Shown here: positions 1-24,393 of the stretch, one piece after another | How the letters are laid out: the number at the start of each line of letters is the position of its first letter | Position numbering within the stretch: the stretch's first letter is position 1 | IMG/VR virus record: IMGVR_UViG_3300048591_000147 | Coordinates: 124,001 to 188,000 of that record | Strand: one strand, 5' to 3' | Length of the DNA: 64,000 bases | Position numbers and translations under genes: made by a program | The notes under the pieces: generated by a model | Database searches by the model: none | Told to the model about the DNA's origin: nothing | What the model saw: only the letters and a program-made list of their open reading frames with translations

Positions 1-204
1 CGCAAGAATCCAGTTAGCGTGCGCTATCCTGAGTCGTATTATGTCAAGGCATCGGACGCACTGGCTGAGGCTGGTATTAACCCTGATGCTGATGGCTACA
101 AGTATGGCAGCGCGTGGAAGTTTGAAGCTGTACCAGCTCGGGTGATTGCGTGGTTATTCTCTTTTGAGATGGCAGATGATCTGCCAGTAGTGTGGGCTAG
201 ATGA
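1..204 (+). CDS. Early-region hypothetical protein, probably 5'-truncated by the window edge
   Basis: Open frame from the window start to TGA at 202-204; same GC-rich codon style as its neighbours. Confidence 0.6.
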   Translation, partial: RKNPVSVRYPESYYVKASDALAEAGINPDADGYKYGSAWKFEAVPARVIAWLFSFEMADDLPVVWAR

Positions 205-212
205 CCAAAACT

Positions 213-245
213 GTTCAGCAATCGTTCAGCTAAGTGATGTATAAT
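213..245 (+). promoter_or_regulatory. Box-type early promoter 1: GTTCAG-N5-GTTCAG-N10-TATAAT
   Basis: GTTCAG 213-218 and 224-229, TATAAT 240-245, CATACCAAC leader 251-259, AGGA RBS, ATG 272. Confidence 0.85.
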
Positions 246-271
246 TCAATCATACCAACAAGGAACAGACC

Positions 272-517
272 ATGAACTCCAGCGAACTCAAGCGCAACAT
301 CGAACGTAACAATCCCGGTAGCCTGTTCTTTTCGCGTGGTGCCATGCAGAATGGCGGTGACACGATGCGCAACTATGGCGTCTGCACTGCAAAGATCATG
401 ACCCCAGATGGTGAAAAAGAGGTATGGGAATTGTATCGCCGTCAAGCCACCCCACGGGGTTACACTAGCTCAGTGTATTGGGACAAGGCAACATTCAAAG
501 TGGTCTACAAGGTCTGA
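272..517 (+). CDS. Early hypothetical protein (81 aa)
   Basis: ORF with its own promoter and AGGA RBS. Confidence 0.8.
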   Translation: MNSSELKRNIERNNPGSLFFSRGAMQNGGDTMRNYGVCTAKIMTPDGEKEVWELYRRQATPRGYTSSVYWDKATFKVVYKV

Positions 518-549
518 TTCAGCTAACGTTCAGGTTCTGAGCGTATAAT
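517..549 (+). promoter_or_regulatory. Box-type early promoter 2: ATTCAG-N5-GTTCAG-N10-TATAAT
   Basis: Half-sites 517-522 and 528-533, TATAAT 544-549; nearly identical to the promoter at 2797-2829. Confidence 0.85.
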
Positions 550-577
550 ACATTACATCAACCAAGGGAATGCAGCC

Positions 578-967
578 ATGATCCTGAACACTGTCGAAGC
601 CACCATCGCTTGCGAAGCTGCAACCACCATTCTGCTGGGGCATTTCCCGCATTTCATGGTCAATATTCGGGTGACGAGAATTCTTGGCGAGGTCGTTCAG
701 TTCACCGTTGCCAACGTTCCCACCGAAAAGGATGCGCCCTATGGGATCATCCACAATGCATCCTTTCTGCTCAAAGGTCTGATCCAGACTGACCGCAAGG
801 GAGCATACATGGAGAATCCGATTCTGTCTGGCCGTCACCTGAAGTTCCGCAAGATCAGCGGTTCCAGTGAAGCCGAAGTGTTGCAAAAGTTCGTGGCATG
901 GTGTGTCAAGAACAAGGCGGAAATTCTCGCCATCGTCCCGAAACTTCGCGGGTATGAGGTCAGTTAA
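578..967 (+). CDS. Early hypothetical protein (129 aa)
   Basis: ORF with promoter and AAGGGA RBS. Confidence 0.8.
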   Translation: MILNTVEATIACEAATTILLGHFPHFMVNIRVTRILGEVVQFTVANVPTEKDAPYGIIHNASFLLKGLIQTDRKGAYMENPILSGRHLKFRKISGSSEAEVLQKFVAWCVKNKAEILAIVPKLRGYEVS

Positions 968-995
968 GCTGGCGTTCAGGTTGTGGGGGTATAAT
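963..995 (+). promoter_or_regulatory. Box-type early promoter 3: GTTAAG-N5-GTTCAG-N10-TATAAT
   Basis: Half-sites 963-968 and 974-979, TATAAT 990-995, CATACCAA leader. Confidence 0.8.
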
Positions 996-1022
996 ACAAC
1001 ACATACCAAGGGAGAACGCAAA

Positions 1023-1247
1023 ATGTCAAAGAAACGACGTGTCATGGTTCGCGAGACAACGATACGTTTCTCCCCAGTCTTCGAGTGTGAGTGTTGCGGG
1101 AAGGTAGAGGTTGGAGTTGCATTCTCTCAGACATTCTATCATCGTCTACCAGAGCTTGACGAGATAGATGTTCCAGCGCATACGCTGCCACCCGGCTGGA
1201 TAATGTTTCACAATCTCCAGTACTGCGTCAATTGTAACATCGAATGA
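1023..1247 (+). CDS. Small Cys-rich (Zn-ribbon-like) early protein
   Basis: Start moved to ATG 1023 (GGAG RBS); CECC...CVNC motifs. Confidence 0.7.
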   Translation: MSKKRRVMVRETTIRFSPVFECECCGKVEVGVAFSQTFYHRLPELDEIDVPAHTLPPGWIMFHNLQYCVNCNIE

Positions 1248-1268
1248 GCCCTTCGGGGCTCTTTTTTA
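1246..1268 (+). terminator. Rho-independent terminator
   Basis: GAGCCC-TTCG-GGGCTC followed by a T-tract. Confidence 0.9.
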
Positions 1269-1285
1269 TTGTGCCACCACTTCCT

Positions 1286-1333
1286 CCGACCACGCACCCA
1301 TTTTACTACACCCACCCTGAACAGAACCTGAAC
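1286..1333 (-). promoter_or_regulatory. Reverse-oriented box element: GTTCAG-N5-GTTCAG-N11-TAAAAT-GGGTGCGTGGTCGG (motif copy A)
   Basis: CTGAAC at 1317-1322 and 1328-1333 on +; ATTTTA 1300-1305; CCGACCACGCACCC 1286-1299. Confidence 0.7.
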
Positions 1334-1350
1334 GACAAGTCATTGATTTT

Positions 1351-1383
1351 GTTCAGCTTGTGTTCAGCTAACTACTGTAGAAT
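1351..1383 (+). promoter_or_regulatory. Box-type early promoter 4: GTTCAG-N5-GTTCAG-N10-TAGAAT
   Basis: Half-sites 1351-1356 and 1362-1367, extended -10 TG-TAGAAT ending 1383, GAGG RBS. Confidence 0.85.
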
Positions 1384-1410
1384 ACTGACTATACCCAATG
1401 AGGATAGATT

Positions 1411-1788
1411 ATGAACACTGCTGAAAGTCGGCTGAAAGAAACGATGTTCATCGTCGAGGCGACCTCATTCGAACGGCATATGCTCTGGGAAACCAATCAC
1501 ACGAAAGTCAAGTGGGAACAGATTTACGATGGATGGCTGGTGACAGTGGGTAAGCTGGATGATCGTCCCTGCTGTATCGATACTTCATGGGCGCGCATCA
1601 ATGGACAATTGGTCATGTTCTATGAACAGTGTAGCCAAGTGACTGACTGTCTTCAGACTGATGCATGGTTGGATGATCATTTCAATGGTACATGGGATAA
1701 CGGTCACCGTCGAGCGCGAACAGATGCGCAGAATTTTCATCTTTGTTTGAACGCGATCAGGGATGCAAATAACCCGGAGGCATTGTAA
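1411..1788 (+). CDS. Early hypothetical protein (125 aa)
   Basis: ORF with promoter and RBS. Confidence 0.8.
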   Translation: MNTAESRLKETMFIVEATSFERHMLWETNHTKVKWEQIYDGWLVTVGKLDDRPCCIDTSWARINGQLVMFYEQCSQVTDCLQTDAWLDDHFNGTWDNGHRRARTDAQNFHLCLNAIRDANNPEAL

Positions 1789-1789
1789 T

Positions 1790-1996
1790 ATGCAAAAGTC
1801 AGTTGTGATTGATTTGACAGTTCCCATCATGTTCATTACCAGTACGCTGGTGATTCTGAAATTTGTTGGAGCAATCAATCTACCATGGTTGTGGGTCTTT
1901 TTTCCTATCTGGGGCACCTACCTTCTTTTGTTTGTCATCTGGATGATGATCGCCTCCTTTGTTCTTATCATGGTGTTTCTTAAAATTACCCGTTGA
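1790..1996 (+). CDS. Small two-TM membrane protein
   Basis: ATG 1790 after GGAGG; hydrophobic sequence with LKFVGAINLPWLWVFFPIW pattern common in phage membrane proteins. Confidence 0.75.
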   Translation: MQKSVVIDLTVPIMFITSTLVILKFVGAINLPWLWVFFPIWGTYLLLFVIWMMIASFVLIMVFLKITR

Positions 1997-2021
1997 CACC
2001 TAATAAACTATTGGGTATAGT
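1993..2021 (+). promoter_or_regulatory. Canonical sigma70 early promoter
   Basis: TTGACA 1993-1998, 17-nt spacer, TATAGT 2016-2021. Confidence 0.85.
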
Positions 2022-2048
2022 CTCTACATCGTCAACGGAGATAGCCAA

Positions 2049-2426
2049 ATGACCACCGAACGGGTTGCCACGCTGGAAGACTTGCAAGGCGCGTATTCTG
2101 ACGTGTTCAAGGACGTCTATGGCTTTCGTCCCCGTGGTTCCGTTATCTGGAACGATGAGGAAGCGTTGAAGGGTGAATTGACGTACCTGTACGCTGAGCT
2201 TGAGCGTGTGATCGAACGCGAGAAGGGTGAGCAGGCAATCGCTGTAGCCGATTTTGAGCAACGGGTGACTGAGACTATCGCCTTGGGTGCTGGAACGCGA
2301 GAGAACGCGATTCGTTGGATTGCACAGGGCATTGATGACGCTGACCCCGATGGCGTATGTTACTCGCTTGGTTTGCCGTTTGGCTACCTTGGTCAAACGT
2401 ATCTCTTTGAGCGTGAAAGTGCTTGA
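2049..2426 (+). CDS. Early hypothetical protein (125 aa)
   Basis: GGAG RBS; YSDVFKDVYGFRPR motif recurrent in large-phage early proteins. Confidence 0.8.
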   Translation: MTTERVATLEDLQGAYSDVFKDVYGFRPRGSVIWNDEEALKGELTYLYAELERVIEREKGEQAIAVADFEQRVTETIALGAGTRENAIRWIAQGIDDADPDGVCYSLGLPFGYLGQTYLFERESA

Positions 2427-2450
2427 CGTTCAATAAAATCGCGATATAAT
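2423..2450 (+). promoter_or_regulatory. Canonical sigma70 early promoter
   Basis: TTGACG 2423-2428, 16-nt spacer, TATAAT 2445-2450, CATACCAAC leader. Confidence 0.8.
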
Positions 2451-2479
2451 CTCAACCATACCAACTAAGGACCAACGTC

Positions 2480-2806
2480 ATGAAAGTTGCCCCGATTCCT
2501 CCCCGTGATCCGAACAGCACGCCCAATCCCGAATTCGTGCGCCTGTTGAAGGAAGGTCTGCCACGGTTGTGGAATGGCCATGGCTTCGAGGGTCGCAATG
2601 AAGAATTCATCTGCCACACCTTTGATCGTTGGGACGAGTGTACCCCAGCAATCCGTGAAATGATCAGCGCTCGTCTGTATGACAAATGGCATCGAACCTA
2701 TCACGATTGGGCTGATCGGTCCAAGACTATGAACAAGTTCACGAAGGCAGAGATCCAAGATGGTCGCAAGCGTTGGATGCTGGACTTGATCGCTGAGTTC
2801 AGCTAG
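2480..2806 (+). CDS. Early hypothetical protein (108 aa)
   Basis: ORF with AAGGA RBS. Confidence 0.75.
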   Translation: MKVAPIPPRDPNSTPNPEFVRLLKEGLPRLWNGHGFEGRNEEFICHTFDRWDECTPAIREMISARLYDKWHRTYHDWADRSKTMNKFTKAEIQDGRKRWMLDLIAEFS

Positions 2807-2829
2807 CGTTCAGGTTCTGAGCGTATAAT
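2797..2829 (+). promoter_or_regulatory. Box-type early promoter 5: GTTCAG-N5-GTTCAG-N10-TATAAT
   Basis: Half-sites 2797-2802 and 2808-2813, TATAAT 2824-2829. Confidence 0.85.
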
Positions 2830-2857
2830 CTCAACCATACCAGACGAGGAACGAACC

Positions 2858-3106
2858 ATGTTCATGCGAATCGAAGATCAGAACGGGACGGTGTTGCTCT
2901 CTTCGGTGTATCCCGATGATCGTATCATGGACCCTGAAGCATGTCTGTTCGATTACTTGGGTGATTTTGAGCTTGATCGCGTGGTGGAAGTCTCTTGGCG
3001 TGAAGAGGCCAATGGATGCTACGAATATCGCGTGATTTTCTTCGAAGATGAAGAGAATCCCGATCACATCGTGGAGTCTGGCGCCTTCATCATCTCGGAT
3101 AGCTGA
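2858..3106 (+). CDS. Small acidic early protein (82 aa)
   Basis: GAGGA RBS; D/E-rich. Confidence 0.75.
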   Translation: MFMRIEDQNGTVLLSSVYPDDRIMDPEACLFDYLGDFELDRVVEVSWREEANGCYEYRVIFFEDEENPDHIVESGAFIISDS

Positions 3107-3108
3107 GT

Positions 3109-3291
3109 ATGGTACTATTCGTGTATGAACCGTCATGGCTGATTGACCCTGAAGATGAAATTCAACGGAGAATGATGATGGAAAAGGATTTGTCTCGCTA
3201 CGTGGAACAATGGGAGCCCACCATTTTCCGCTCCAAACACTACAAGGCTCGCGTGTTGCGCGCCAAGGCTCGGAGGATCAAGCAATGGTAG
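3109..3291 (+). CDS. Small hypothetical protein (60 aa)
   Basis: Starts 3 nt after the previous stop; followed by a hairpin. Confidence 0.5.
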   Translation: MVLFVYEPSWLIDPEDEIQRRMMMEKDLSRYVEQWEPTIFRSKHYKARVLRAKARRIKQW

Positions 3292-3295
3292 CTTC

Positions 3296-3317
3296 AAGCG
3301 CCCTTTCGGGCGCTTCT
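3296..3317 (+). terminator. Terminator-like hairpin
   Basis: AAGCGCCC-TTTC-GGGCGCTT; weak T-tract. Confidence 0.65.
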
Positions 3318-3332
3318 GGTATCTCAACCTTC

Positions 3333-3380
3333 CCGACCACGCACCCATTTTATACCAACCAACCTGAACCAACGCTGAAT
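3333..3380 (-). promoter_or_regulatory. Reverse-oriented box element: ATTCAG-N5-GTTCAG-N11-TAAAAT-GGGTGCGTGGTCGG (motif copy B)
   Basis: CTGAAC 3364-3369 and CTGAAT 3375-3380 on +; ATTTTA 3347-3352; CCGACCACGCACCC 3333-3346. Confidence 0.7.
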
Positions 3381-3411
3381 GAAACGCGCCAATAAATTTA
3401 CAATCAATTGC

Positions 3412-3440
3412 TTTACAAGCTAATCCATTAGGCGTATAGT
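3412..3440 (+). promoter_or_regulatory. Canonical sigma70 early promoter
   Basis: TTTACA 3412-3417, 17-nt spacer, TATAGT 3435-3440. Confidence 0.75.
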
Positions 3441-3467
3441 TCATCCATACCAGCTAGGGAGAACACC

Positions 3468-3845
3468 ATGGCCAAGCGAATCCAAAAGCCCGTCCTGTTG
3501 ACCAGCAAGACCCATCAGGTCATTGACAAGGATTTCATTGTCAAGGCATTGACGAAAAGCAATGCATGGTTGTTCCGCGCCATCGTGTCGATTTTCGAAT
3601 ACCAAACCGCTGACGAACAGACTGCCGAAGTCACCGCGCACGATAATGGCGTTGGCTTCAGTGGTGTTGATGCACAGATGATGTCCAGCTTCGCCAAACA
3701 GATCATCGAACATGGCAAGGGTAACAGCAAGTTCGCTAGCCCGCTGTCCCCGAAACAGATCGAATTGGCGCGCAAGCGTATGGTCAAGTATGCCGGACAA
3801 TTGCTGCGCATCGCGCAGAGCCGTTCAGCCGCCGTTCAGCTTTAA
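3468..3845 (+). CDS. Early conserved hypothetical protein (125 aa)
   Basis: GGGAG RBS; QTADEQ...NGVGF..DA...LSPKQ...KYAGQL pattern seen in large phages. Confidence 0.8.
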   Translation: MAKRIQKPVLLTSKTHQVIDKDFIVKALTKSNAWLFRAIVSIFEYQTADEQTAEVTAHDNGVGFSGVDAQMMSSFAKQIIEHGKGNSKFASPLSPKQIELARKRMVKYAGQLLRIAQSRSAAVQL

Positions 3846-3855
3846 CCTGTATACT
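3823..3855 (+). promoter_or_regulatory. Box-type early promoter 6: GTTCAG-N5-GTTCAG-N10-TATACT
   Basis: Half-sites 3823-3828 and 3834-3839, TATACT 3850-3855, CATACCAAC leader 3861. Confidence 0.85.
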
Positions 3856-3884
3856 ACTCACATACCAACCAAGGAAGCAAAACC

Positions 3885-4244
3885 ATGAAGTCGATTCGCG
3901 AAGCTCAAACGTTCGTCACCATTCTCAACCTGATTCAGGACCGCTCGCGCGAAATCCTCTGCGATATCGTGGACGCGCTGATCTTCAACCGTGAATCCGT
4001 CCAGTCCGTTCTGAATCGTTGGGGCATCAAGCTCAATGCGGAAGCTCCCGCGATGGCTCCGAACAGTGTCACCATCAACCATGGCGGGCTCGCCTTCAAC
4101 ATGACCATCGTCCAATACAGTCAGGTCGTCAGGCTGATTTACAGTGGCCAGTGGATCGAGGGTATCAAGGCCATTCGCGCAGCAACCAATTCCGGGCTGA
4201 AGGAAGCCAAGGACTTGGCCGAGTACATCCGCGATAACAAGTGA
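3885..4244 (+). CDS. Early protein with C-terminal ribosomal bL12 (L7/L12) CTD-like domain
   Basis: IEGIKAIRAATNSGLKEAKDLAE matches the bL12 KIxxIKxxRxxTGxGLKEAKxxVE signature. Confidence 0.7.
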   Translation: MKSIREAQTFVTILNLIQDRSREILCDIVDALIFNRESVQSVLNRWGIKLNAEAPAMAPNSVTINHGGLAFNMTIVQYSQVVRLIYSGQWIEGIKAIRAATNSGLKEAKDLAEYIRDNK

Positions 4245-4273
4245 TCCATTTTCAAAAACGTAATTTTATTCTG

Positions 4274-4313
4274 AACAACCCCGGATCAGCGATGGTCCGG
4301 GGTTGTTGTTTTT
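4274..4313 (+). terminator. Rho-independent terminator
   Basis: AACAACCCCGGATCA/TGGTCCGGGGTTGTT stem followed by a T-tract. Confidence 0.85.
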
Positions 4314-4331
4314 ATGCCACACCAGATTTTC

Positions 4332-4368
4332 TGGCGAGAATCGCCACAACTAATGGCGAAAATCGCCA
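4332..4368. promoter_or_regulatory. Tandem palindromic operators TGGCGA-N3-TCGCCA (x2)
   Basis: Palindromes with perfect 6-bp arms at 4332-4346 and 4354-4368, 22 bp apart. Confidence 0.7.
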
Positions 4369-4391
4369 CACAATATCAACCGTAAAAGCCC

Positions 4392-4420
4392 TTGTATCTT
4401 TAGTTTAATTGGCGTACAAT
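4392..4420 (+). promoter_or_regulatory. Sigma70 early promoter
   Basis: TTGTAT 4392-4397, 17-nt spacer, TACAAT 4415-4420, CATACCAAC leader, AGGAG RBS. Confidence 0.75.
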
Positions 4421-4445
4421 AGGCACATACCAACAGGAGAACACC

Positions 4446-4838
4446 ATGGAAATCGAAGTCGGGGTAGGGTACGATGATAATGGTGAAATCATCAAGAAAA
4501 TGCTGCCTGCGGTGTTCACCGTCTGTCAGAACTGCGAGGGTCATGGTTTTGTGCTGAACCCCAGCATGGCTGGCCATTGTTACACGCAGGATGAATTCAA
4601 TGATGCGTTCGATGACGAGGATGATCGTGCGGAGTATTTCAAGCGTGGTGGCAAGTATGACGTGCAGTGTCAGCTTTGCAAGGGTGTGCGCGTGGTGAAG
4701 GTCATCGCGGATGATGATCAACTGACTGACGAGCAGAAAGAGATCAGCAGAGCAAACGAGTCTTTTGAGATGGGTCTGCACATGGACGCATACTATGATG
4801 CAATGACGATGCGCGGAGAATCTGGCATCTGGGATTAA
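4446..4838 (+). CDS. Acidic early protein with DnaJ-like Zn-finger motifs
   Basis: CQNCEG.G and CQLCKG motifs. Confidence 0.75.
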   Translation: MEIEVGVGYDDNGEIIKKMLPAVFTVCQNCEGHGFVLNPSMAGHCYTQDEFNDAFDDEDDRAEYFKRGGKYDVQCQLCKGVRVVKVIADDDQLTDEQKEISRANESFEMGLHMDAYYDAMTMRGESGIWD

Positions 4839-5074
4839 TCGTTGGCGGTGCGATCAGTAGCAATGGACTGTAGGGTCGCACCGTCTATCATGAAATGCTG
4901 TATTAGATAATCCTAAATTAGAGTGACGGTGTACTACCACACTAACACACCCGCAGTCTCAATAACCTACCTTTTCGATACAACCGAAAAATCGCGCGAA
5001 GACTCAAAAGCATAGCACGAAAAATAGTTGAAAAATAGTGCTCTTTGGCACTTGTGTTATAAAATAATATCAGG

Positions 5075-5098
5075 CAAAATGAGTGCGTGGTCGGGGAA
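5075..5098 (+). repeat. Intergenic motif copy C (CAAAATGAGTGCGTGGTCGGGGAA)
   Basis: One mismatch to the 19-bp core of copies A/B/D; TTGTGT lies 17 nt upstream of CAAAAT. Confidence 0.8.
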
Positions 5099-5199
5099 CT
5101 CTGGCAGGCAAACGCCCTGCGGCAAAATGATCTTACGAAAGTGGTTGCACGGCATCGGCGCTATGGTATGATTCTCTCACCCCAACGGAGATACCCCAC

Positions 5200-5529
5200 A
5201 TGAGCCTGAGCCGCCTCCGCAACAAAGTCGAAGCCCGCATTGTCCGCGCCATCGTTTCGGACGCGCTGAAAATGGGTTACACCGTGTCGGTGTACGATGG
5301 TGAAGAGTTCGCCATCGAACGCTCCAGCAATCGTAGCGCCATCCTCGCCGAGTGTGCTGCCACTGACGAAGACCGCCTGTACTTCACCCGCAACGGTCAG
5401 ACGAAAGCCATCGGTGTGGTCTGGATCATCTACGGTGAGGGTGACACCTGCATGACTGACTGGACTGACACCGATGAAGTCAACGCCATCCTGAAGCGGG
5501 CCAACAAAATCGCTGGACACGATGACTGA
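5200..5529 (+). CDS. Early hypothetical protein (109 aa)
   Basis: Promoter TTGCAC(5145)-N16-TATGAT(5167), GGAG RBS. Confidence 0.8.
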   Translation: MSLSRLRNKVEARIVRAIVSDALKMGYTVSVYDGEEFAIERSSNRSAILAECAATDEDRLYFTRNGQTKAIGVVWIIYGEGDTCMTDWTDTDEVNAILKRANKIAGHDD

Positions 5530-5544
5530 AATAGTGTAGCAGAC

Positions 5545-5568
5545 AAGCCCCCGAAAGGGGGCTTTTTC
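5545..5568 (+). terminator. Rho-independent terminator
   Basis: AAGCCCCC-GAAA-GGGGGCTT followed by a T-tract. Confidence 0.9.
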
Positions 5569-5618
5569 TGGACCATCTGCGGTACAATTGATTACTTTAC
5601 AGGTACAAAGCAATATGC

Positions 5619-5708
5619 CAAAATGGGTGCGTGGTCGGAGGAACTGGCGGACACCGCCGCGCGCTTCGCGCTAAGGCTGGCAATTTCCCCGACCGCCATC
5701 CCATTTTG
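5619..5708. repeat. Motif copies D (+) and E (-) forming a 90-bp imperfect inverted repeat with two internal hairpins
   Basis: CAAAATGGGTGCGTGGTCGGAGGAA...TTTCCCCGACCGCCATCCCATTTTG; internal GGCGG-ACA-CCGCC and GCGCG-CTT-CGCGC. Confidence 0.75.
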
Positions 5709-5893
5709 AACTAACTTATAAAGCAATGGAAGTGCCATTCGTCGGAAAGTCTAGATGGGGGTCGCTAGCTTCTGGCCGATGCTCGGGCGATCCAGCGGAT
5801 GATCGTTACACCGTTGCAAATGGCGCACGCCGCCTGATATACTACCTTCATCGGGCGGCAATCCTGCTGCCCGACACCTTCGGAGAAAGCACA

Positions 5894-6604
5894 ATGGAAT
5901 TCCTCAAGAACATCAGTGTCAAGTCGGATTTTGGTTTCTGGATCACCATGGGCATGCTGGAGGCGATCTATGTGCTGGCAGAGTGTGCCGGTGGACGCTT
6001 CGCCGCGATCATGGGTTACACTCCGGTGGGCAAAGACTGGACGGTGACGCCCGTCTACGATGCCACGTTCACCAGTCGCTTCGATACTGCCAAGCTCTAT
6101 GCTCGCAAGCTGGAAGCCTTGCAGGCGATCACCTTCGAGGACGTGGCCGATGCCATCGCGAAACAGCCGAAACTCTCTGCGCTCGAACCTGCTGAACTGC
6201 TGGAACTGTTCAATGCTCGCAAGGCAATGGAAGTCGCCAGCCTGCTCCGCACTCGCGAGGATACCGCAGCACACCGCGAAGGTCAGGCACGCTGCCACGC
6301 CACCGTGGAGGATGGTCTGCCCAATGGTGTGCGTGTGCACTACGTCACACAGAAGGGCGCTGACGGGCTCATGCATCCGGTCCTGCGTGATGGTCTGCCC
6401 ATCGCTGAAAGCATCCGTGTGCACGCACTGGAACAGTCTCGCACGTATCGTCAGGCTGGTGTGCGCAAGGTAGTGAACAGTGGTGCGCCAGTGCTCATGG
6501 GCAATGCTATCAGCACGCTACTGAACAAGCGCAGCGTGGGCATCACATCGTTCACACTGCGTGACAACTATGAAGCACTGCGCATTGACGGAGCCACGCT
6601 CTAA
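5894..6604 (+). CDS. Early hypothetical protein (~236 aa), very GC-rich
   Basis: Start moved to ATG 5894 (GGAG RBS; promoter TTGCAA 5814-N18-TATACT 5838). Confidence 0.8.
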   Translation: MEFLKNISVKSDFGFWITMGMLEAIYVLAECAGGRFAAIMGYTPVGKDWTVTPVYDATFTSRFDTAKLYARKLEALQAITFEDVADAIAKQPKLSALEPAELLELFNARKAMEVASLLRTREDTAAHREGQARCHATVEDGLPNGVRVHYVTQKGADGLMHPVLRDGLPIAESIRVHALEQSRTYRQAGVRKVVNSGAPVLMGNAISTLLNKRSVGITSFTLRDNYEALRIDGATL

Positions 6605-6628
6605 CAGTAACAGACAGTAACACAACGC

Positions 6629-6657
6629 GAAGCCCCAGCATGCTGGGGCTTTCGTTT
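6629..6657 (+). terminator. Rho-independent terminator ending the GC-rich block
   Basis: AAGCCCCAGC-AT-GCTGGGGCTT then TCGTTT. Confidence 0.8.
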
Positions 6658-6795
6658 GAGTATGATCAGATAGTAACTAGTTAGTAACTTGATAATGGTC
6701 AGGGGGATTATGTGATAGGTGAAAAACAGTTTGGGGTTACGATGAGTTACTTTATTTACTCATTATATATAATCACTCCGCCGGGGGATCAAGCC

Positions 6796-6830
6796 ATTTA
6801 ATTTCTATACCCTATTTAATTTCTATACCC
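6796..6830. repeat. Tandem 17-bp direct repeat ATTTAATTTCTATACCC x2
   Basis: Copies at 6796-6812 and 6814-6830 in the non-coding GC/AT junction. Confidence 0.9.
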
Positions 6831-6958
6831 CTTTTTCCATTCTATCCAAAATCCTATAATATTTTCTGTAATTCTATCACACGATTTGGCCATTCTCTCT
6901 AGACGATTTGTTCCGCGTATTTACTTGATGGTATCTCTGAAAAATTTCCAGAAAAATT

Positions 6959-7129
6959 TTAACGCTTATTGATCAAGAGGATAGCGTCTGTCATATTCTT
7001 TAATAGTACATATATCGACGCATTTACTTGTAATTTAGCTTTTGTTATCTCTGGCGTATCATTCTCTTCTGCTTCAAATGTTAAATCAACAAGTGCAAAA
7101 GCCTTGGCAACTCTTTCTGCGTTATTCAT
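6959..7129 (-). CDS. Small hypothetical protein (56 aa, MNNAERVAKAF...), below the ORF-track cutoff
   Basis: Translated by hand; starts just after the cca stop with an AAGGA RBS. Confidence 0.6.
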   Translation of the reverse strand: MNNAERVAKAFALVDLTFEAEENDTPEITKAKLQVNASIYVLLKNMTDAILLINKR

Positions 7130-7131
7130 TA

Positions 7132-8220
7132 TCATTCCTTAATTATATTATTCAAAGCTTCCTTACGTAATCTCTTTAATTCAATACCAAATGCAGCACC
7201 AGTTAAACCTTGTTCCAATAGATGTTGACTTGATACCGAACGCACCCTGTCGATTAACCCCATAAATTTTTCAGTATCAAAGTCGTTGAAAACTATTTCA
7301 CATATCCTGATAAACTTATCCAGTGTATCGGTTTTATGGTGTACGTCCAGACTTTCAATAATTTTGAATAATTCTTCATAATCATTGTTCAATGCGTGTT
7401 GTATCTTTGGCAGATTTTTGTAAGTTAGTATTGCCAACCTCTTTTCATTTGTTGGTATCTTTAGTTTTTCACAGATATCATGTATATCACCTTCGTTACG
7501 GCTATTAGACATTAATATGGAAAACACAACATCGCATGATTCTTTCTTATCATTCACTGCTTTATCCAAAGCATTGTTTACAGTTTCATTCAATGATAAG
7601 TGCGGCACCAGTCTATTCAATGCTCCACACTTATCCAAGACTCTAAAGAAGATGCTTGGATTTGTTTTTGAGAAGGTCTTTTTGATTTCTGCCCATACTC
7701 TTTCTGACGTTAAATTGTCTACTTCGCCATTTGTCACCATTTCTTTCATTAAATGTAATGTCTGTTCATGCAAAATGAAATCATAGGTAGCGCAAAATCT
7801 CGCTACTCTTAAGATGCGTACCGGGTCTTCTCTAAATGCTTCTGAAACATGGCGTATGACACCATTGCTAAGATCTGATAAACCATTAAACGGATCTATA
7901 AGATTTCCATTGGAATCAATTGCCATAGCATTGATTGTGATGTCTCTACGGAAGAGATCATCCTTGAGTGTTACCCCATTGGTACTTACAGAGAAACCAT
8001 TGTATCCTTTTCCTGTTTTTCTTTCTGTTCTCGCCAAGGCGTATTCGTTGCCAGTGTCTGGATGAAGAAAGACTGGAAAGTCTGCACCAACGGGTTTGAA
8101 ACCATTAGATAACATTTCCTCTTCAGAAGAATTTATGACAACATAATCTAGGTCAGATGATTTCTTTCCTAATAATAAATCTCTGACCGCACCACCAACG
8201 AGATATACGTTTTTGTTCAT
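7132..8220 (-). CDS. cca: tRNA nucleotidyltransferase (CCA-adding enzyme, class II)
   Basis: LVGGAVRD...DLDYVV, EYALARTERK, DLFRRDITINAMA, EDPVRILRVARF, ERVWAE motifs. Confidence 0.93.
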   Translation of the reverse strand: MNKNVYLVGGAVRDLLLGKKSSDLDYVVINSSEEEMLSNGFKPVGADFPVFLHPDTGNEYALARTERKTGKGYNGFSVSTNGVTLKDDLFRRDITINAMAIDSNGNLIDPFNGLSDLSNGVIRHVSEAFREDPVRILRVARFCATYDFILHEQTLHLMKEMVTNGEVDNLTSERVWAEIKKTFSKTNPSIFFRVLDKCGALNRLVPHLSLNETVNNALDKAVNDKKESCDVVFSILMSNSRNEGDIHDICEKLKIPTNEKRLAILTYKNLPKIQHALNNDYEELFKIIESLDVHHKTDTLDKFIRICEIVFNDFDTEKFMGLIDRVRSVSSQHLLEQGLTGAAFGIELKRLRKEALNNIIKE

Positions 8221-14448: not shown

Positions 14449-14931
14449 ATGAAAAGTCCGTATGTAAGAGAGGTTGTTGAGATCAATGGCAAGCGATATC
14501 TAGAACTTGTTGATCATTGTGGGTGGAAAGCTGGTGATAAAATCAGCTTTAGACACCAGTTGCCCGGATATACCTTAAATGTTGTTACAGAAGAGCCCGG
14601 AATCACCATCATGGCAGATCACGGTTCGACTGGTATCTGGGACTATCAGACTCGCTATATGTTGGAATACAAGGAAGTCCCAGAATTTGATGAAGAAGAT
14701 ATTAACCTCATCAAGTTGTTTATGGAATTATATGAGACTTGGCCTTGGGATTCTGATGATGCAGCAGAGATAGAGTCTGCCAAAAATGGATATGGTGTGG
14801 CGCTATTATTAAAGTCTAAACACCCAGAGATGAATATCTATTTTTATAATTATCAAAATGTAGTAAAAGAAGTACCAGCGGTATTTGACAGCAGAGCTAA
14901 AGTAGAATTAATGGAGATTAAAAAATGTTAA
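14449..14931 (+). CDS. Hypothetical protein
   Basis: 160-aa ORF coupled to the RNA ligase. Confidence 0.65.
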   Translation: MKSPYVREVVEINGKRYLELVDHCGWKAGDKISFRHQLPGYTLNVVTEEPGITIMADHGSTGIWDYQTRYMLEYKEVPEFDEEDINLIKLFMELYETWPWDSDDAAEIESAKNGYGVALLLKSKHPEMNIYFYNYQNVVKEVPAVFDSRAKVELMEIKKC

Positions 14932-16238
14932 GTGTAAAGAATGTAGGGTCGAACTACCTAGCACAGGTTGTGAAACTTGTAAATGTTAGAAAGCACACAA
15001 ATGCGGACAAGCTACAGTGCGTTACTATTCAAGGTAACAACGTTGTAACGGGTCTTGACGCAAAGGACGGTGCCGTATATGTGTATTTTCCTTTGGAATG
15101 TACTATTAATTTAGAATTTTTGGCATATTCTAATTCGTTCAGAGATAAGACCCTGAACGCTGATACTACTGTTGCCGGATTCTTTGAACAGAACGGTCGT
15201 GTGAAAGCCGTTAAGCTTCGTAATGAAAAGTCAGAAGGTTACATCGTGCCTGCTCATTCAATTGAGGATTGGTTGAAGACGAAGAACATCACCATAAACT
15301 TGGCTAATAGTATTACAGAGGAATTTGACACTATTTCTGGTATTTTGATTTGTGAAAAATACACCATCAAGTACAGCAGGCAGGCATCTCAAGGTGGTGG
15401 TAAGCAGAAGAATAAAGGCAAAGAAAAGCGTTTTGAAAGATTGATTTCAACACAGTATTCTTTAGCCGAAGACACTTCTGCACTGAAGAAGAATATCCAT
15501 AGGATCGATCCAGAGGATCAGATCACAATCAGTTACAAGATGCATGGTTGTAACTTCTCAATGGGTCGGGTGTTGTGTAATAAACCATTAAAGTGGTATG
15601 AAAAGCTGTTGAAGAAGATTGGTGTGAATGTTGTCGATACTCACTATGATACTATTTACGCTTCGCGTAATGTGATCAAAAACCAGTATGAGGAAGAGAG
15701 CACACAGCATTACTATGATGCTAATATCTGGCGCATTATTGCTGACAAATACAAGGACACTTTAAAAGACGGTATTACTATCCATGGTGAAATCGTGGGA
15801 CAGTTGCCAACTGGTTCGTGGATTCAGAGTAAGTATGACTATGGCGTTCCAGAAAAACAGGCAGAGTTGTATGTGTACAGAATGTTCTATAGATCACCAT
15901 CTGGTGATGTGTTCGAATTCAACACCGAACAGCTTATAGCTTATTGTGATAAGGTTGGTCTGAAGTATGTCCCCGTGTTTTATCAGGGTAAAGCTAAAGA
16001 CTTATTTGACATAAGTGTCTCCGAGCACTGGCACCAGACATTCCTACAGAAGTTGATTGAAAAGTATAACGAGAAAGACTGTTATATGTGTAAGAATAAG
16101 GTGCCAGAAGAAGGTATCACATTGATTTTAAACAGTAAAAATGATTTCGAAGCGTTCAAATTGAAATCATTCAGATTCCTACAACAGGAAACTGAAGAAC
16201 TGGACAAGGGTCAAGTTAATATAGAGGATGAAGTATAA
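14925..16238 (+). CDS. ATP-dependent RNA ligase, DRB0094-like (N-terminal OB domain plus Rnl2-type ligase)
   Basis: HTNADKL OB domain; motif I KMHGCN; IHGEIVG; EEGITL; FKLKS. Confidence 0.88.
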   Translation: MLSVKNVGSNYLAQVVKLVNVRKHTNADKLQCVTIQGNNVVTGLDAKDGAVYVYFPLECTINLEFLAYSNSFRDKTLNADTTVAGFFEQNGRVKAVKLRNEKSEGYIVPAHSIEDWLKTKNITINLANSITEEFDTISGILICEKYTIKYSRQASQGGGKQKNKGKEKRFERLISTQYSLAEDTSALKKNIHRIDPEDQITISYKMHGCNFSMGRVLCNKPLKWYEKLLKKIGVNVVDTHYDTIYASRNVIKNQYEEESTQHYYDANIWRIIADKYKDTLKDGITIHGEIVGQLPTGSWIQSKYDYGVPEKQAELYVYRMFYRSPSGDVFEFNTEQLIAYCDKVGLKYVPVFYQGKAKDLFDISVSEHWHQTFLQKLIEKYNEKDCYMCKNKVPEEGITLILNSKNDFEAFKLKSFRFLQQETEELDKGQVNIEDEV

Positions 16239-22066: not shown

Positions 22067-23656
22067 TTACAATGACGCGATGATTCTTGGTACATCTGGT
22101 GAGAACCCCACTACATCCAACTGCTTAGGATCTTTTGGATCAGCAATTGTGAACTGTGTTGCGGTTGTAGCACACACAATCAAGCCAGAGTTCTTTCTCG
22201 CTGCATTACGATAATGCTGTAGTGCCTGAGAAGGATGACCATTTGCACCGAAATAAGTTTCGGAGTCTGTTATAACCACGAACTTATCAACGTCCAGCTT
22301 GTTCTGAGTAGCATATACCATTGGCAATGCACAGTCAGTTGCTCCGAACCCTAAACGCTGAGCCTTACGGATTGCGTCTTCGATTCTTGACTTATATGTG
22401 ATATCCAATTCAACAAACTTATGTGAAAAACCCATAATTACAGAATTCTGATTCTGTTTGTTGATTGCCATCGCCAATGCTACTGAAGCTTCTGCTGCTG
22501 AGAAGTTTGGAATACCAGCCACCTGACTTCCCATCATGCTTCCCGAGATGTCAACACCTAACAAATAATTTTCATTAGTTGGTTCGATATTGTCAAATGA
22601 ATTATAAAATGCGTCTTGCAACGAATCCATAATTCTCGCTGATGGTGTCCAGACATTGGAACCCTTCAAACCACGACCGCTGCCATAAATCTTGCTTGCG
22701 ATCAGAATTGAGATAGGGTGAATTCTGCTCTTTGCCAACCACTCACGATTTGTCAACTTGCTAGCAACTAGCTTTTCACTAGCTGATAACTTGCTCAACA
22801 AACCATTTGAAGCCATGGTGCCCAAATTACGAAGCAGCGCTGTTGCAGGCATCTTTGGCAGCATCGCATCCCAGACTTCAGGACTGTTCAGAAACTGCGT
22901 TGGAAGCGCTTCACGGGGCAAATTATAGTCTTCAACCAACTTGACCACTTCTTTTACACTTGAAGCTGTTGTAGCCTTCAAATATCCGTGAACAATCGCT
23001 GGCAATTCAGCAGCTTCGATAGACGTATTCAATTTTGCAAACTTGAATAGATTGTTCTGAACTTCAGAATCTGCCTTCGCATGACATAGATGTAACACGT
23101 CATGATGTGACCAACCATCACGCTGACGGTACTTAACCAACTGGTACGCTAGCTGGTCAGCATCCTTATCCTTATACCATTTAGTCAACGCCTTACGCAC
23201 AGACGAACCGAAACCGCCACCCATCTGCTTGTACTGATCCACGAATGAGAAGAAGTCTGTTGAAGTTCTGCAAACCTTTGCCAAGTTAGCCAACGCTGCT
23301 TTCTTCACTTCTGGGTTACCATTCTTGACTGCGACAGCCAGTGCGAACACCGCTGGTGCATTCTTGACAGCTAAACCCTTATCAGATACTTCGGCAATAC
23401 GTTCTACAACACGTACACCGTCAGTAACCAATAACTTCAATAGGATTTCAGCATTGTCTGCTGACATCTTATTCGCTGATACATAATAAGAACCAGAGTT
23501 TGATCCTAAGATCAAGAAACGATCTAGCTGGTCCCAAATCGATGCTACGAAAGAATAACCACCAGCATTATTCTTTTCCTGATTTGAACCTACGATCTTC
23601 TGAGTCTGTGGTGTTGTTGCGCTCTTTGACAAGCTTGTTAACTTTGCGTATGACAT
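22067..23656 (-). CDS. rsr: Ro60/Rsr-like RNA-binding protein (TROVE plus vWA domains)
   Basis: NNAGGY, LDRFLILGS..GSYY, KYRQRDGWSHHD, ALLRNLG, MIDAS DISGSM, TDCALPM, ITDSET. Confidence 0.95.
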   Translation of the reverse strand: MSYAKLTSLSKSATTPQTQKIVGSNQEKNNAGGYSFVASIWDQLDRFLILGSNSGSYYVSANKMSADNAEILLKLLVTDGVRVVERIAEVSDKGLAVKNAPAVFALAVAVKNGNPEVKKAALANLAKVCRTSTDFFSFVDQYKQMGGGFGSSVRKALTKWYKDKDADQLAYQLVKYRQRDGWSHHDVLHLCHAKADSEVQNNLFKFAKLNTSIEAAELPAIVHGYLKATTASSVKEVVKLVEDYNLPREALPTQFLNSPEVWDAMLPKMPATALLRNLGTMASNGLLSKLSASEKLVASKLTNREWLAKSRIHPISILIASKIYGSGRGLKGSNVWTPSARIMDSLQDAFYNSFDNIEPTNENYLLGVDISGSMMGSQVAGIPNFSAAEASVALAMAINKQNQNSVIMGFSHKFVELDITYKSRIEDAIRKAQRLGFGATDCALPMVYATQNKLDVDKFVVITDSETYFGANGHPSQALQHYRNAARKNSGLIVCATTATQFTIADPKDPKQLDVVGFSPDVPRIIASL

Positions 23657-24219: not shown

Positions 24220-24294
24220 TGGAGCAAAATTCGGGAATCGAACCCGATTCTCTAGACTGGCAATCTAGGGCAACAACCAATATACCAATTTTGC
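24220..24294 (-). tRNA. tRNA-Gly(GCC)
   Basis: Cloverleaf: acceptor GCAAAAT/ATTTTGC, anticodon arm CTAGA-TTGCCAG-TCTAG, T arm TCGGG-TTCGATT-CCCGA, U73 and encoded CCA. Confidence 0.92.
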
Positions 24295-24302
24295 TTTTTA
24301 TC

Positions 24303-24393
24303 TGGCGGTTAGGGAGGGATTCGAACTCTCAAACCCATTGCTGGATCAAACAGCTTTCGAGACTGTGTAGTGCGCCAATACTATAGCCTAACC
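24303..24393 (-). tRNA. tRNA-Ser(CGA), atypical
   Basis: Acceptor GGTTAGG/CCTAACC, anticodon arm ACAGT-CTCGAAA-GCTGT, long variable arm, TTCGAAT loop, G73 and CCA. Confidence 0.88.

Follow-up and report, generated by a model that had tools for sequence, protein, structure and literature searches.

The stretch of DNA analysed here (the window) comprises 64,000 nucleotides, positions 124,001 to 188,000 of IMG/VR record IMGVR_UViG_3300048591_000147, and is part of a 315-kb contig of an uncultured jumbo phage (phage 1) distantly related to Xanthomonas phage XacN1. Its first 6650 nucleotides are the right-hand end of the phage early region, with small genes on the + strand, most with their own promoter, at 45-60% GC. 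At about 6650 the GC content drops sharply to 37%. The early region continues about 27 kb upstream of the window, giving a total of roughly 34 kb.

Six forward promoters, identified like all those described here from sequence alone, carry a tandem box in place of a -35 element. They are GTTCAG-caatc-GTTCAG-N10-TATAAT (213-245), in front of ORF 272-517; ATTCAG-ctaac-GTTCAG-N10-TATAAT (517-549), in front of ORF 578-967; GTTAAG-ctggc-GTTCAG-N10-TATAAT (963-995), in front of ORF 1023-1247; GTTCAG-cttgt-GTTCAG-N10-TAGAAT (1351-1383), in front of ORFs 1411-1788 and 1790-1996; GTTCAG-ctagc-GTTCAG-N10-TATAAT (2797-2829), in front of ORF 2858-3106; and GTTCAG-ccgcc-GTTCAG-N10-TATACT (3823-3855), in front of ORF 3885-4244. 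Two further copies of the box lie on the minus strand, at 1317-1333 and 3364-3380. The original prediction had recorded these only as reversed copies, but each is followed on the minus strand by TAAAAT at N11 (1300-1305 and 3347-3352), so they are promoters as well: GTTCAG-gttct-GTTCAG-N11-TAAAAT (1300-1333), which is back to back with the promoter at 1351-1383 and fires into a conserved unit, GGGTGCGTGGTCGG (1286-1299), and ATTCAG-cgttg-GTTCAG-N11-TAAAAT (3347-3380), which fires into the conserved unit at 3333-3346. Plus-strand copies of this unit lie behind -35/-10 promoters at 5052-5094 (TTGTGT-N17-CAAAAT-GAGTGCGTGGTCGG) and at 5596-5638 (TTTACA-N17-CAAAAT-GGGTGCGTGGTCGG).

The tandem-box promoters are interleaved with six ordinary sigma70 promoters on the + strand. 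Four of these were recovered by a consensus scan: TTGACA-N17-TATAGT (1993-2021), in front of ORF 2049-2426; TTGACG-N16-TATAAT (2423-2450), in front of ORF 2480-2806; TTTACA-N17-TATAGT (3412-3440), in front of ORF 3468-3845; and TTGCAA-N18-TATACT (5814-5843), in front of ORF 5894-6604 (phrog_38317, conserved in the XacN1 family). The other two are weaker but could be read directly in the sequence: TTGTAT-N17-TACAAT (4392-4420), in front of ORF 4446-4838, and TTGCAC-N16-TATGAT (5145-5172), in front of ORF 5200-5529. None of the six forward tandem-box promoters has a TTGACA-like hexamer 16-18 nt upstream of its -10 box, and none appeared in the sigma70 consensus scan.

To determine whether the motif could have arisen by chance, the window was searched for RTTMAG-N5-GTTCAG-N10-TAKAMT. 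The pattern occurs exactly six times, at the positions given above and always on the + strand, whereas no occurrence was found in 100 dinucleotide-preserving shuffles. Tandem RTTMAG boxes with a 5-nt spacer occur eight times, all within 1-3900 and all with a -10 box at N10 or N11, while other spacers (2-9 nt) give at most one scattered hit each; only the 5-nt spacer is enriched. The original prediction, that promoters here share a tandem box at fixed spacing to the -10 box and lack a -35 element, was therefore correct as an observation, and the phenomenon is larger than it had described.

An enrichment of the motif outside the window had been proposed as a test, and this was borne out. A relaxed scan of the same contig found 23 boxes in 17.8 kb against 1.07 in shuffles. 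From 27,000 nt upstream of the window to position 6,650 within it there are 37 boxes of the form RTTCAG-N5-RTTCAG with a -10 box at N10 or N11, with no TTGACA at 16-18 nt, against roughly 15-20 ordinary sigma70 promoters. The other 57 kb of the window holds one chance-level box match. The box is locked to the -10 box in one orientation at every site, and plus-strand sites are followed at 23-31 nt by a Shine-Dalgarno sequence and an ORF. Spacers and flanks differ between copies while the two hexamers stay fixed, although some copies share longer identical stretches, for example 517-549 and 2797-2829. The estimate that about half of the genes are served by such promoters thus understates the case, as over the whole early region the box class outnumbers canonical promoters about 2 to 1.

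The repeat equals the published PhoP motif of Pseudomonas aeruginosa, which is given as GTTCAGNNNNNRTTCAG (PMC3156716) and as the ChIP-seq motif G/ATTCAG (PMC7916210). In the phage, 28 of 34 departures from GTTCAG are G-to-A at position 1, which is the same degeneracy. The half-site, the 5-nt spacer and the direct-repeat orientation are shared with the PhoP-activated promoters of P. aeruginosa (oprH-phoP-phoQ, arn). Natural counterparts were also found. The box plus -10 box lies directly upstream of regulators whose best NCBIfam model is PhoP in a Gammaproteobacteria MAG and in a Lysobacterales MAG. Of 80 PhoP-like regulator loci fetched by protein similarity alone, and hence not selected for a -10 box, 16 carry GTTCAT-N5-GTTCAG ahead of the operon, mostly followed at N11 by a TA-start -10 box. 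The box-to-(-10) distance of 10-11 nt in the phage is the one found at PhoP-like operons in other proteobacteria. In the phage, however, the box occurs about 37 times, in front of small take-over genes and short antisense units rather than envelope genes.

Membership of the XacN1-like jumbo myoviruses is supported by a DNA polymerase 41-43% identical, and an early protein (5894-6601) 41-45% identical, to those of XacN1, Xoo-sp13, CM1 and RAS14, and by a shared leader and TAAAAT-GG..GG.CGG unit. XacN1, Xoo-sp13 and RAS14 have the same leader and -10 box but use TTGACA and have no tandem box; the RAS14 orthologue of ORF 578-967 has a TTGACA promoter. The same boxes were, on the other hand, present in a second jumbo phage from the same sample series (phage 2, IMGVR_UViG_3300048854_000081). 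The two phages have no nucleotide similarity, and phage 2 is only about 40% identical in a shared early protein and no closer to phage 1 than XacN1 is.

The possibility that the phages encode the activator themselves was investigated. Pfam and PHROGs searches found no response regulator, Trans_reg_C, winged-helix, HTH, MotA (MotA_activ, MotCF), AsiA, CII or sigma family in 95 of the 315 kb of phage 1, which includes the whole early region; that no response regulator is encoded in the window, as originally stated, was confirmed with Pfam. In 30 kb of phage 2 (less than 10% of its genome) no response regulator, Trans_reg_C, winged-helix, HTH, MotA, AsiA, CII or sigma family was found either. A collection-wide scan found no PhoP-like gene on either contig, although it used patterns from the receiver domain only and so would miss a stand-alone DNA-binding domain. 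The only early proteins found to be shared by the two box-bearing phages are also present in box-less relatives.

It seems likely, therefore, that these are activator-dependent promoters read by the host sigma70 RNA polymerase, and assignment to the OmpR/PhoP type is well supported. Each keeps a near-consensus -10 box and the leader typical of this phage family, but the -35 hexamer is replaced by two head-to-tail RTTCAG half-sites 11 bp apart, the promoter-proximal one ending 10-11 bp upstream of the -10 box. This is the layout at which a dimer of an OmpR/PhoB-family response regulator binds and recruits polymerase. In the PhoB-dependent pho-box promoters of E. coli (class II activation), two 11-bp direct-repeat units likewise replace the -35 box and end about 10 bp upstream of the -10 box, and the activator contacts sigma70 region 4; the half-site there differs (CTGTCAT with an A/T-rich spacer) and the promoters are cellular, not viral. 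As the half-site sequence is that of PhoP-type regulators, the most likely activator is a PhoP-like regulator of the as yet unidentified host (probability about 0.5). In that case about two thirds of the early transcription units of this phage, and a set of short antisense units, would fire in proportion to the activity of a host PhoPQ-like envelope/Mg2+ sensor, while the remaining canonical promoters would fire unconditionally. The analysis itself establishes the motif, its excess over chance, its fixed geometry, its identity with the PhoP motif, its use at natural PhoP-like operons, its absence from the box-less relatives and its presence in a second phage. That a protein binds the box, that transcription depends on this protein and its signal, and that the protein is host-encoded are inferences from sequence. 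The original interpretation, a wiring of early genes to a host two-component sensor, is thus only partly supported.

A phage-encoded activator, already named as an alternative in the original prediction, is less likely but remains possible. In this scheme the ordinary promoters would be immediate-early, and one of their products, a new small protein or a captured PhoP-type winged-helix domain, would bind the tandem box and switch on the box promoters as a delayed-early or middle class, in the manner of T4 MotA/AsiA or lambda CII. The interleaving of box and canonical promoters fits this equally well, as T4 early and middle promoters are interleaved in the same way, and the proximal half-site, at about -28 to -23, is close to the position of the T4 MotA box. 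Making two thirds of the early promoters depend on a conditionally active host regulator looks risky for a lytic phage and would be easier to accept if the factor were always supplied by the phage; dozens of early ORFs have no family assignment, and any of these small proteins could be a new activator. Against this, besides the negative searches in the parts of the two genomes covered, the exact identity of half-site, spacer and degeneracy with a cellular PhoP motif would be a coincidence unless the phage protein derives from PhoP. The known systems also differ in sequence. T4 middle promoters have a sigma70 -10 box, no -35 box and an activator box about 11-13 bp upstream of the -10 box, but this is a single 9-bp box (TGCTT core) centred near -30, whereas the element here is a tandem GTTCAG repeat spanning about -39 to -23. 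The lambda CII-dependent promoters (pRE, pI, paQ) have a direct repeat that straddles a missing -35 box and is bound by a phage activator, but the repeat is TTGC-N6-TTGC with a 10-bp period and belongs to a temperate lysis/lysogeny decision.

It is unlikely that the boxes are operators or decoys, bound by a host or phage protein to shut early promoters off later in infection or soaking up the host's PhoP to blunt its envelope response, with the -10 box alone giving enough transcription. There are about 37 high-quality sites per genome, multiplied by replication, PhoP acts as a repressor at some P. aeruginosa promoters (PMC3156716), and phi29 early promoters are repressed by the host regulator Spo0A (PMC2731898). 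However, the fixed orientation and N10-11 spacing are the activation geometry also seen at autoregulated PhoP-like operons, whereas the PhoP repressor sites described in PMC3156716 lie downstream of the -10 box. The phage promoters also have neither a -35 box nor an extended -10 box (TGn), so they should be weak unaided. Least likely of all is a passively copied promoter cassette with no dedicated factor, spread by recombination among the small early genes and resembling PhoP boxes by chance. The longer stretches shared by some copies, and the richness of the early region in repeated leaders and units, could suggest this, but it is hard to reconcile with hexamers that stay fixed between variable spacers and with the same box in a phage without nucleotide similarity, and a cassette lacking a -35 box would be selected against unless something binds it.

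A lytic phage wired to a host two-component system is not new in itself. Cyanophage pstS is under host PhoBR (Zeng and Chisholm 2012, cited in PMC10976474), with pho boxes in P-SSM2 and S-PM2d, and the early promoters of phi29 and Nf carry 0A boxes for Spo0A (PMC2731898), so that transcription changes with host state. Those cases involve a few auxiliary genes, or repression of early promoters, whereas here the box is the core -35 substitute of most early promoters. The take-over genes of this phage probably need a PhoP-type regulator, host-encoded or phage-encoded, to be switched on. More tentatively, a lineage of lytic jumbo phages may have rewired about two thirds of its early promoters from constitutive -35/-10 promoters to the host's PhoP-PhoQ-type envelope/Mg2+ sensing system. 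The strength of host take-over would then be set by the envelope-stress state of the host, possibly triggered by the phage's own adsorption or DNA injection, and the roughly 37 boxes per genome would also drain PhoP from its cellular targets.

The strict pattern of the original prediction, two RTTMAG-type hexamers followed at a fixed distance by a -10 box, was searched for across the window. It occurs six times, all on the + strand, at 213, 517, 963, 1351, 2797 and 3823, and in none of 100 dinucleotide-preserving shuffles; the observation therefore holds. Tandem RTTMAG hexamers are enriched only with a 5-nt spacer (eight copies, all within 1-3900), and GTTCAG is followed by a TAnAnT hexamer only at N10 (the six + sites) or N11 (the two reversed copies, read on the minus strand). 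The reversed copies at 1317-1333 and 3364-3380, which had been listed simply as further copies, are therefore, by sequence, promoters too, with TAAAAT at 1300-1305 and 3347-3352. None of the box promoters appears in a sigma70 -35/-10 consensus scan. Of the six ordinary promoters originally proposed, that scan does recover those at 1993, 2423, 3412 and 5814; those at 4392 and 5145 are weaker but readable in the sequence. Each + strand box promoter is followed at 26-29 nt by a Shine-Dalgarno sequence and a small ORF. One of the early proteins (window 3885-4241, 119 aa) has a C-terminal segment resembling the ribosomal L7/L12 C-terminal domain (Pfam E 2.4e-4, below the cut-off) and may mimic the ribosomal stalk.

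The contig, IMGVR_UViG_3300048591_000147, of which the window is positions 124,001-188,000, is 314,956 bp long, and the same phage (phage 1) was also assembled from JGI samples 3300048589, 3300048590 and 3300048839. Nucleotide searches of the early region and of 20 kb of the AT-rich part against cultured phages gave no match, and relatives were reached only at the protein level. The family-B DNA polymerase is 41-43% identical, and an early protein (5894-6601) 41-45% identical, to those of the jumbo myoviruses Xanthomonas phages XacN1 and Xoo-sp13 and Stenotrophomonas phages CM1 and RAS14. The first 6.65 kb of the window (45-60% GC) is the end of an early region of small same-strand genes. The remaining 57 kb (37% GC) encodes ribonucleotide reductase, DNA polymerase, thymidylate synthase, Ro60, RNA ligases, glycosyltransferases and tail sheath. 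The possibility that this sharp break in composition (window about 6600-6700) marks a join of two unrelated sequences was considered but rejected, as both sides have the same closest relatives and lie on one contig recovered in several samples. An RNA-repair-style gene set is also present (window 7135-8220(-), 14925-16235(+), 22070-23656(-) and 24220-24393(-)): a CCA-adding/poly(A) polymerase family enzyme, an RNA ligase, Ro60/TROVE with a vWA domain, an RlaP-family protein elsewhere in the window, and tRNA-Gly(GCC) and tRNA-Ser(CGA).

To determine the full extent of the motif, the contig was followed upstream of the window through three further segments (L010, L215 and L217). The early region runs from about window -27,000 to +6,650 and contains 37 tandem boxes followed by a -10 hexamer at N10 or N11, 23 on the + strand and 14 on the - strand. 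A relaxed search gave 23 boxes in 17.8 kb, against 1.07 in shuffles, and one in the other 57 kb. Canonical promoters scoring at least 10 of 12 number 27 in the same region against 8.2 in shuffles, so about 15-20 are real. The box class is therefore the majority, and not about half as originally proposed. The two hexamers are fixed while spacers and flanks vary; of 34 departures from GTTCAG, 28 are G-to-A at position 1.

The early regions of XacN1, RAS14 and Xoo-sp13 carry dozens of consensus TTGACA-N17-TATAAT promoters with the same downstream leader (cACAtaCCAAC...GGA) as in the window, but not one tandem GTTCAG box. In the window this conserved 5' leader (cATACCAAC...AGGA) follows both promoter classes, for example at 246-271, 550-577, 996-1022, 2451-2479, 3441-3467 and 3856-3884, and is thus a family-wide early-mRNA feature. 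The RAS14 orthologue of ORF 578-967, which has a box promoter here, sits behind TTGACA. The box is thus a lineage-specific substitute for the -35 element.

A second feature of the early region is a promoter-proximal unit, TAAAAT/CAAAAT-GGGTGCGTGGTCGG, which occurs 14 times: at window 1286-1305(-), 3333-3352(-), 5075-5094(+) and 5619-5638(+), the last with a reversed partner near 5690-5712, and in ten more copies in the upstream segments. All seven minus-strand copies lie behind tandem boxes (N11) and all seven plus-strand copies behind -35 hexamers (N17). Related units exist in XacN1, Xoo-sp13, RAS14 and the second phage described below. Rfam at a permissive threshold gave no credible family in 1-7200, and folding of the putative short RNAs gave weak z-scores, except for the copy at 5623-5715, which is an inverted pair of the unit; there is no convincing fold for the unit. 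Short antisense RNAs, R-loop or primer promoters, or a protein site are all candidates for its role.

A second IMG/VR jumbo contig from the same sample series (IMGVR_UViG_3300048854_000081, 350 kb; also in Logan run SRR35924699) has the same arrangement. In the 30 kb examined (two segments, L134 and L218, at about 33,000-63,300 of the contig) there are nine or so RTTCAG-N5-RTTCAG boxes, with TATAAT at N10 or TAAAAT at N11, among thirteen TTGACA promoters, some of which drive tRNA genes. This phage also has its own variant of the TAAAAT unit (AGGGTCGTGGATGGG). It shares only a handful of early proteins with phage 1, at 24-45% identity, and all the clear matches are proteins also found in box-less relatives. 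In the one family that could be compared across all five phages, the two box-bearing phages are 40.6% identical, no closer than either is to XacN1; a tree of this protein was unresolved, so only pairwise identities are used. Single matches in two other loci, L005 and L007, are at the chance level expected for IMG/VR.

The published PhoP consensus of Pseudomonas aeruginosa is GTTCAGNNNNNRTTCAG (PMC3156716), and ChIP-seq gives G/ATTCAG as the PhoP motif (PMC7916210). This matches the phage box in half-site, spacer, orientation and position-1 degeneracy. Papers on Xanthomonas or Rhodanobacter PhoP gave no usable motif. One genome per species was then scanned for GTTCAG-N5-GTTCAG-N10/11-TAnAAT. 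At least 120 loci match, a lower bound that supports neither an enrichment statistic nor a host assignment, and no Pseudomonas locus was among those returned. Many were promoters in front of small secreted proteins in Gammaproteobacteria. A distinct conserved class, ttGTTCAGaatccGTTCAGa-N10-TAnAAT, is shared by Paenibacillus, Cohnella, Brevibacillus and Bacillus genomes among many Bacillota loci, and is presumably the regulon of an unidentified OmpR-family regulator. In a Gammaproteobacteria MAG and a Lysobacterales MAG the box precedes a response regulator whose best NCBIfam model is PhoP (221-223 bits, below the equivalog cut-off), and in two others the best model is PmrA.

The geometry was checked independently with 80 PhoP-like regulator loci fetched by protein similarity alone. 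Sixteen carry GTTCAT-N5-GTTCAG 350-570 nt upstream of the regulator gene, ahead of a small ORF, and in most of them a TA-start -10-like hexamer follows at N11. So the box, and its distance to the -10 box, is the natural autoregulatory promoter layout of PhoP-like operons. One of these loci comes from the same sample as the phage. In several of the PhoP-like operons with this layout in host flanks of IMG/VR contigs, the ATG of a small ORF lies only about 6-12 nt after the -10 box, suggesting a leaderless first gene. The geometry also equals that of E. coli PhoB pho boxes, which end about 10 bp upstream of the -10 box.

The possibility that the phage encodes its own activator was investigated by scanning every ORF of the window and of 31 kb upstream against Pfam, and the early ORFs against PHROGs, and by inspecting precomputed Pfam calls for the fetched loci. 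No Response_reg, Trans_reg_C, HTH, MotA, AsiA, CII or sigma family was found in 95 kb of phage 1 or 30 kb of phage 2, which agrees with the original prediction that the window encodes no response regulator. The only receiver-like protein is a 103-aa stand-alone cREC_REC domain (E 3.6e-23; positions 1833-2141 of segment L215, about window -19217 to -18909), which has no DNA-binding part and is itself transcribed, as predicted from sequence, from a tandem-box promoter. The Pfam family name links it to cyclic-phosphate (RNA-end) processing rather than to phosphorelay. All 80 loci from the collection-wide search for PhoP-like genes lay on contigs other than those of the two phages, although its patterns came from the receiver domain only.

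That these are activator-dependent sigma70 promoters of the OmpR/PhoP type is held with good confidence, on sequence evidence alone. The analysis itself establishes the motif, its excess over chance, its fixed spacing, its match to the PhoP motif and its presence in a second phage but not in the box-less relatives; that a protein binds the box, that transcription depends on that protein and its signal, and that it is encoded by the host are all inferred. The original interpretation, that the take-over genes are wired to a host two-component sensor, is thus partly supported. The exact PhoP-type sequence, and the sharing of the box by two deeply diverged phages from one habitat, favour a host regulator, and the probability of a host PhoP-family regulator is put at about 0.5. 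Against this, no host has been identified, about 220 kb of phage 1 lies outside the sequence read, and the many orphan early proteins could hide a new activator. In addition, a scheme of canonical immediate-early promoters plus activator-dependent promoters is what T4 (MotA/AsiA) and lambda (CII) achieve with their own proteins. A phage-encoded activator is a possible, though less likely, alternative. Roles as operators or decoys seem unlikely, and a promoter cassette with no dedicated factor very unlikely.

Control of phage genes by host response regulators is already known: cyanophage pstS and other genes respond through PhoB (Zeng and Chisholm 2012; PMC10976474), and phi29/Nf early promoters are repressed by Spo0A (PMC2731898). 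Phage promoters whose -35 box is replaced by an activator site are also known, as in T4 middle promoters and lambda pRE. What is new here is a jumbo phage lineage in which a PhoP-type tandem box is the standard upstream element of most early promoters, converted from TTGACA promoters still present in relatives.

Early phage promoters are usually thought of as strong, unconditional sigma70 promoters, and host-state sensing by lytic phages is known only for a few auxiliary genes (the PhoB pho boxes in cyanophages) or as repression (Spo0A on phi29). Whichever activator is used, the promoters make a ready set of about 37 natural variants for studying class II activation. If it is phage-encoded, it would be a new 'middle-mode' system that uses a PhoP-like site. 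If instead host PhoP drives most early transcription, this would give a clean natural example of wholesale promoter-class conversion between related phages, and the outcome of infection would depend on Mg2+, antimicrobial-peptide or envelope stress, which is relevant to phage ecology and to the conditions under which such phages kill.
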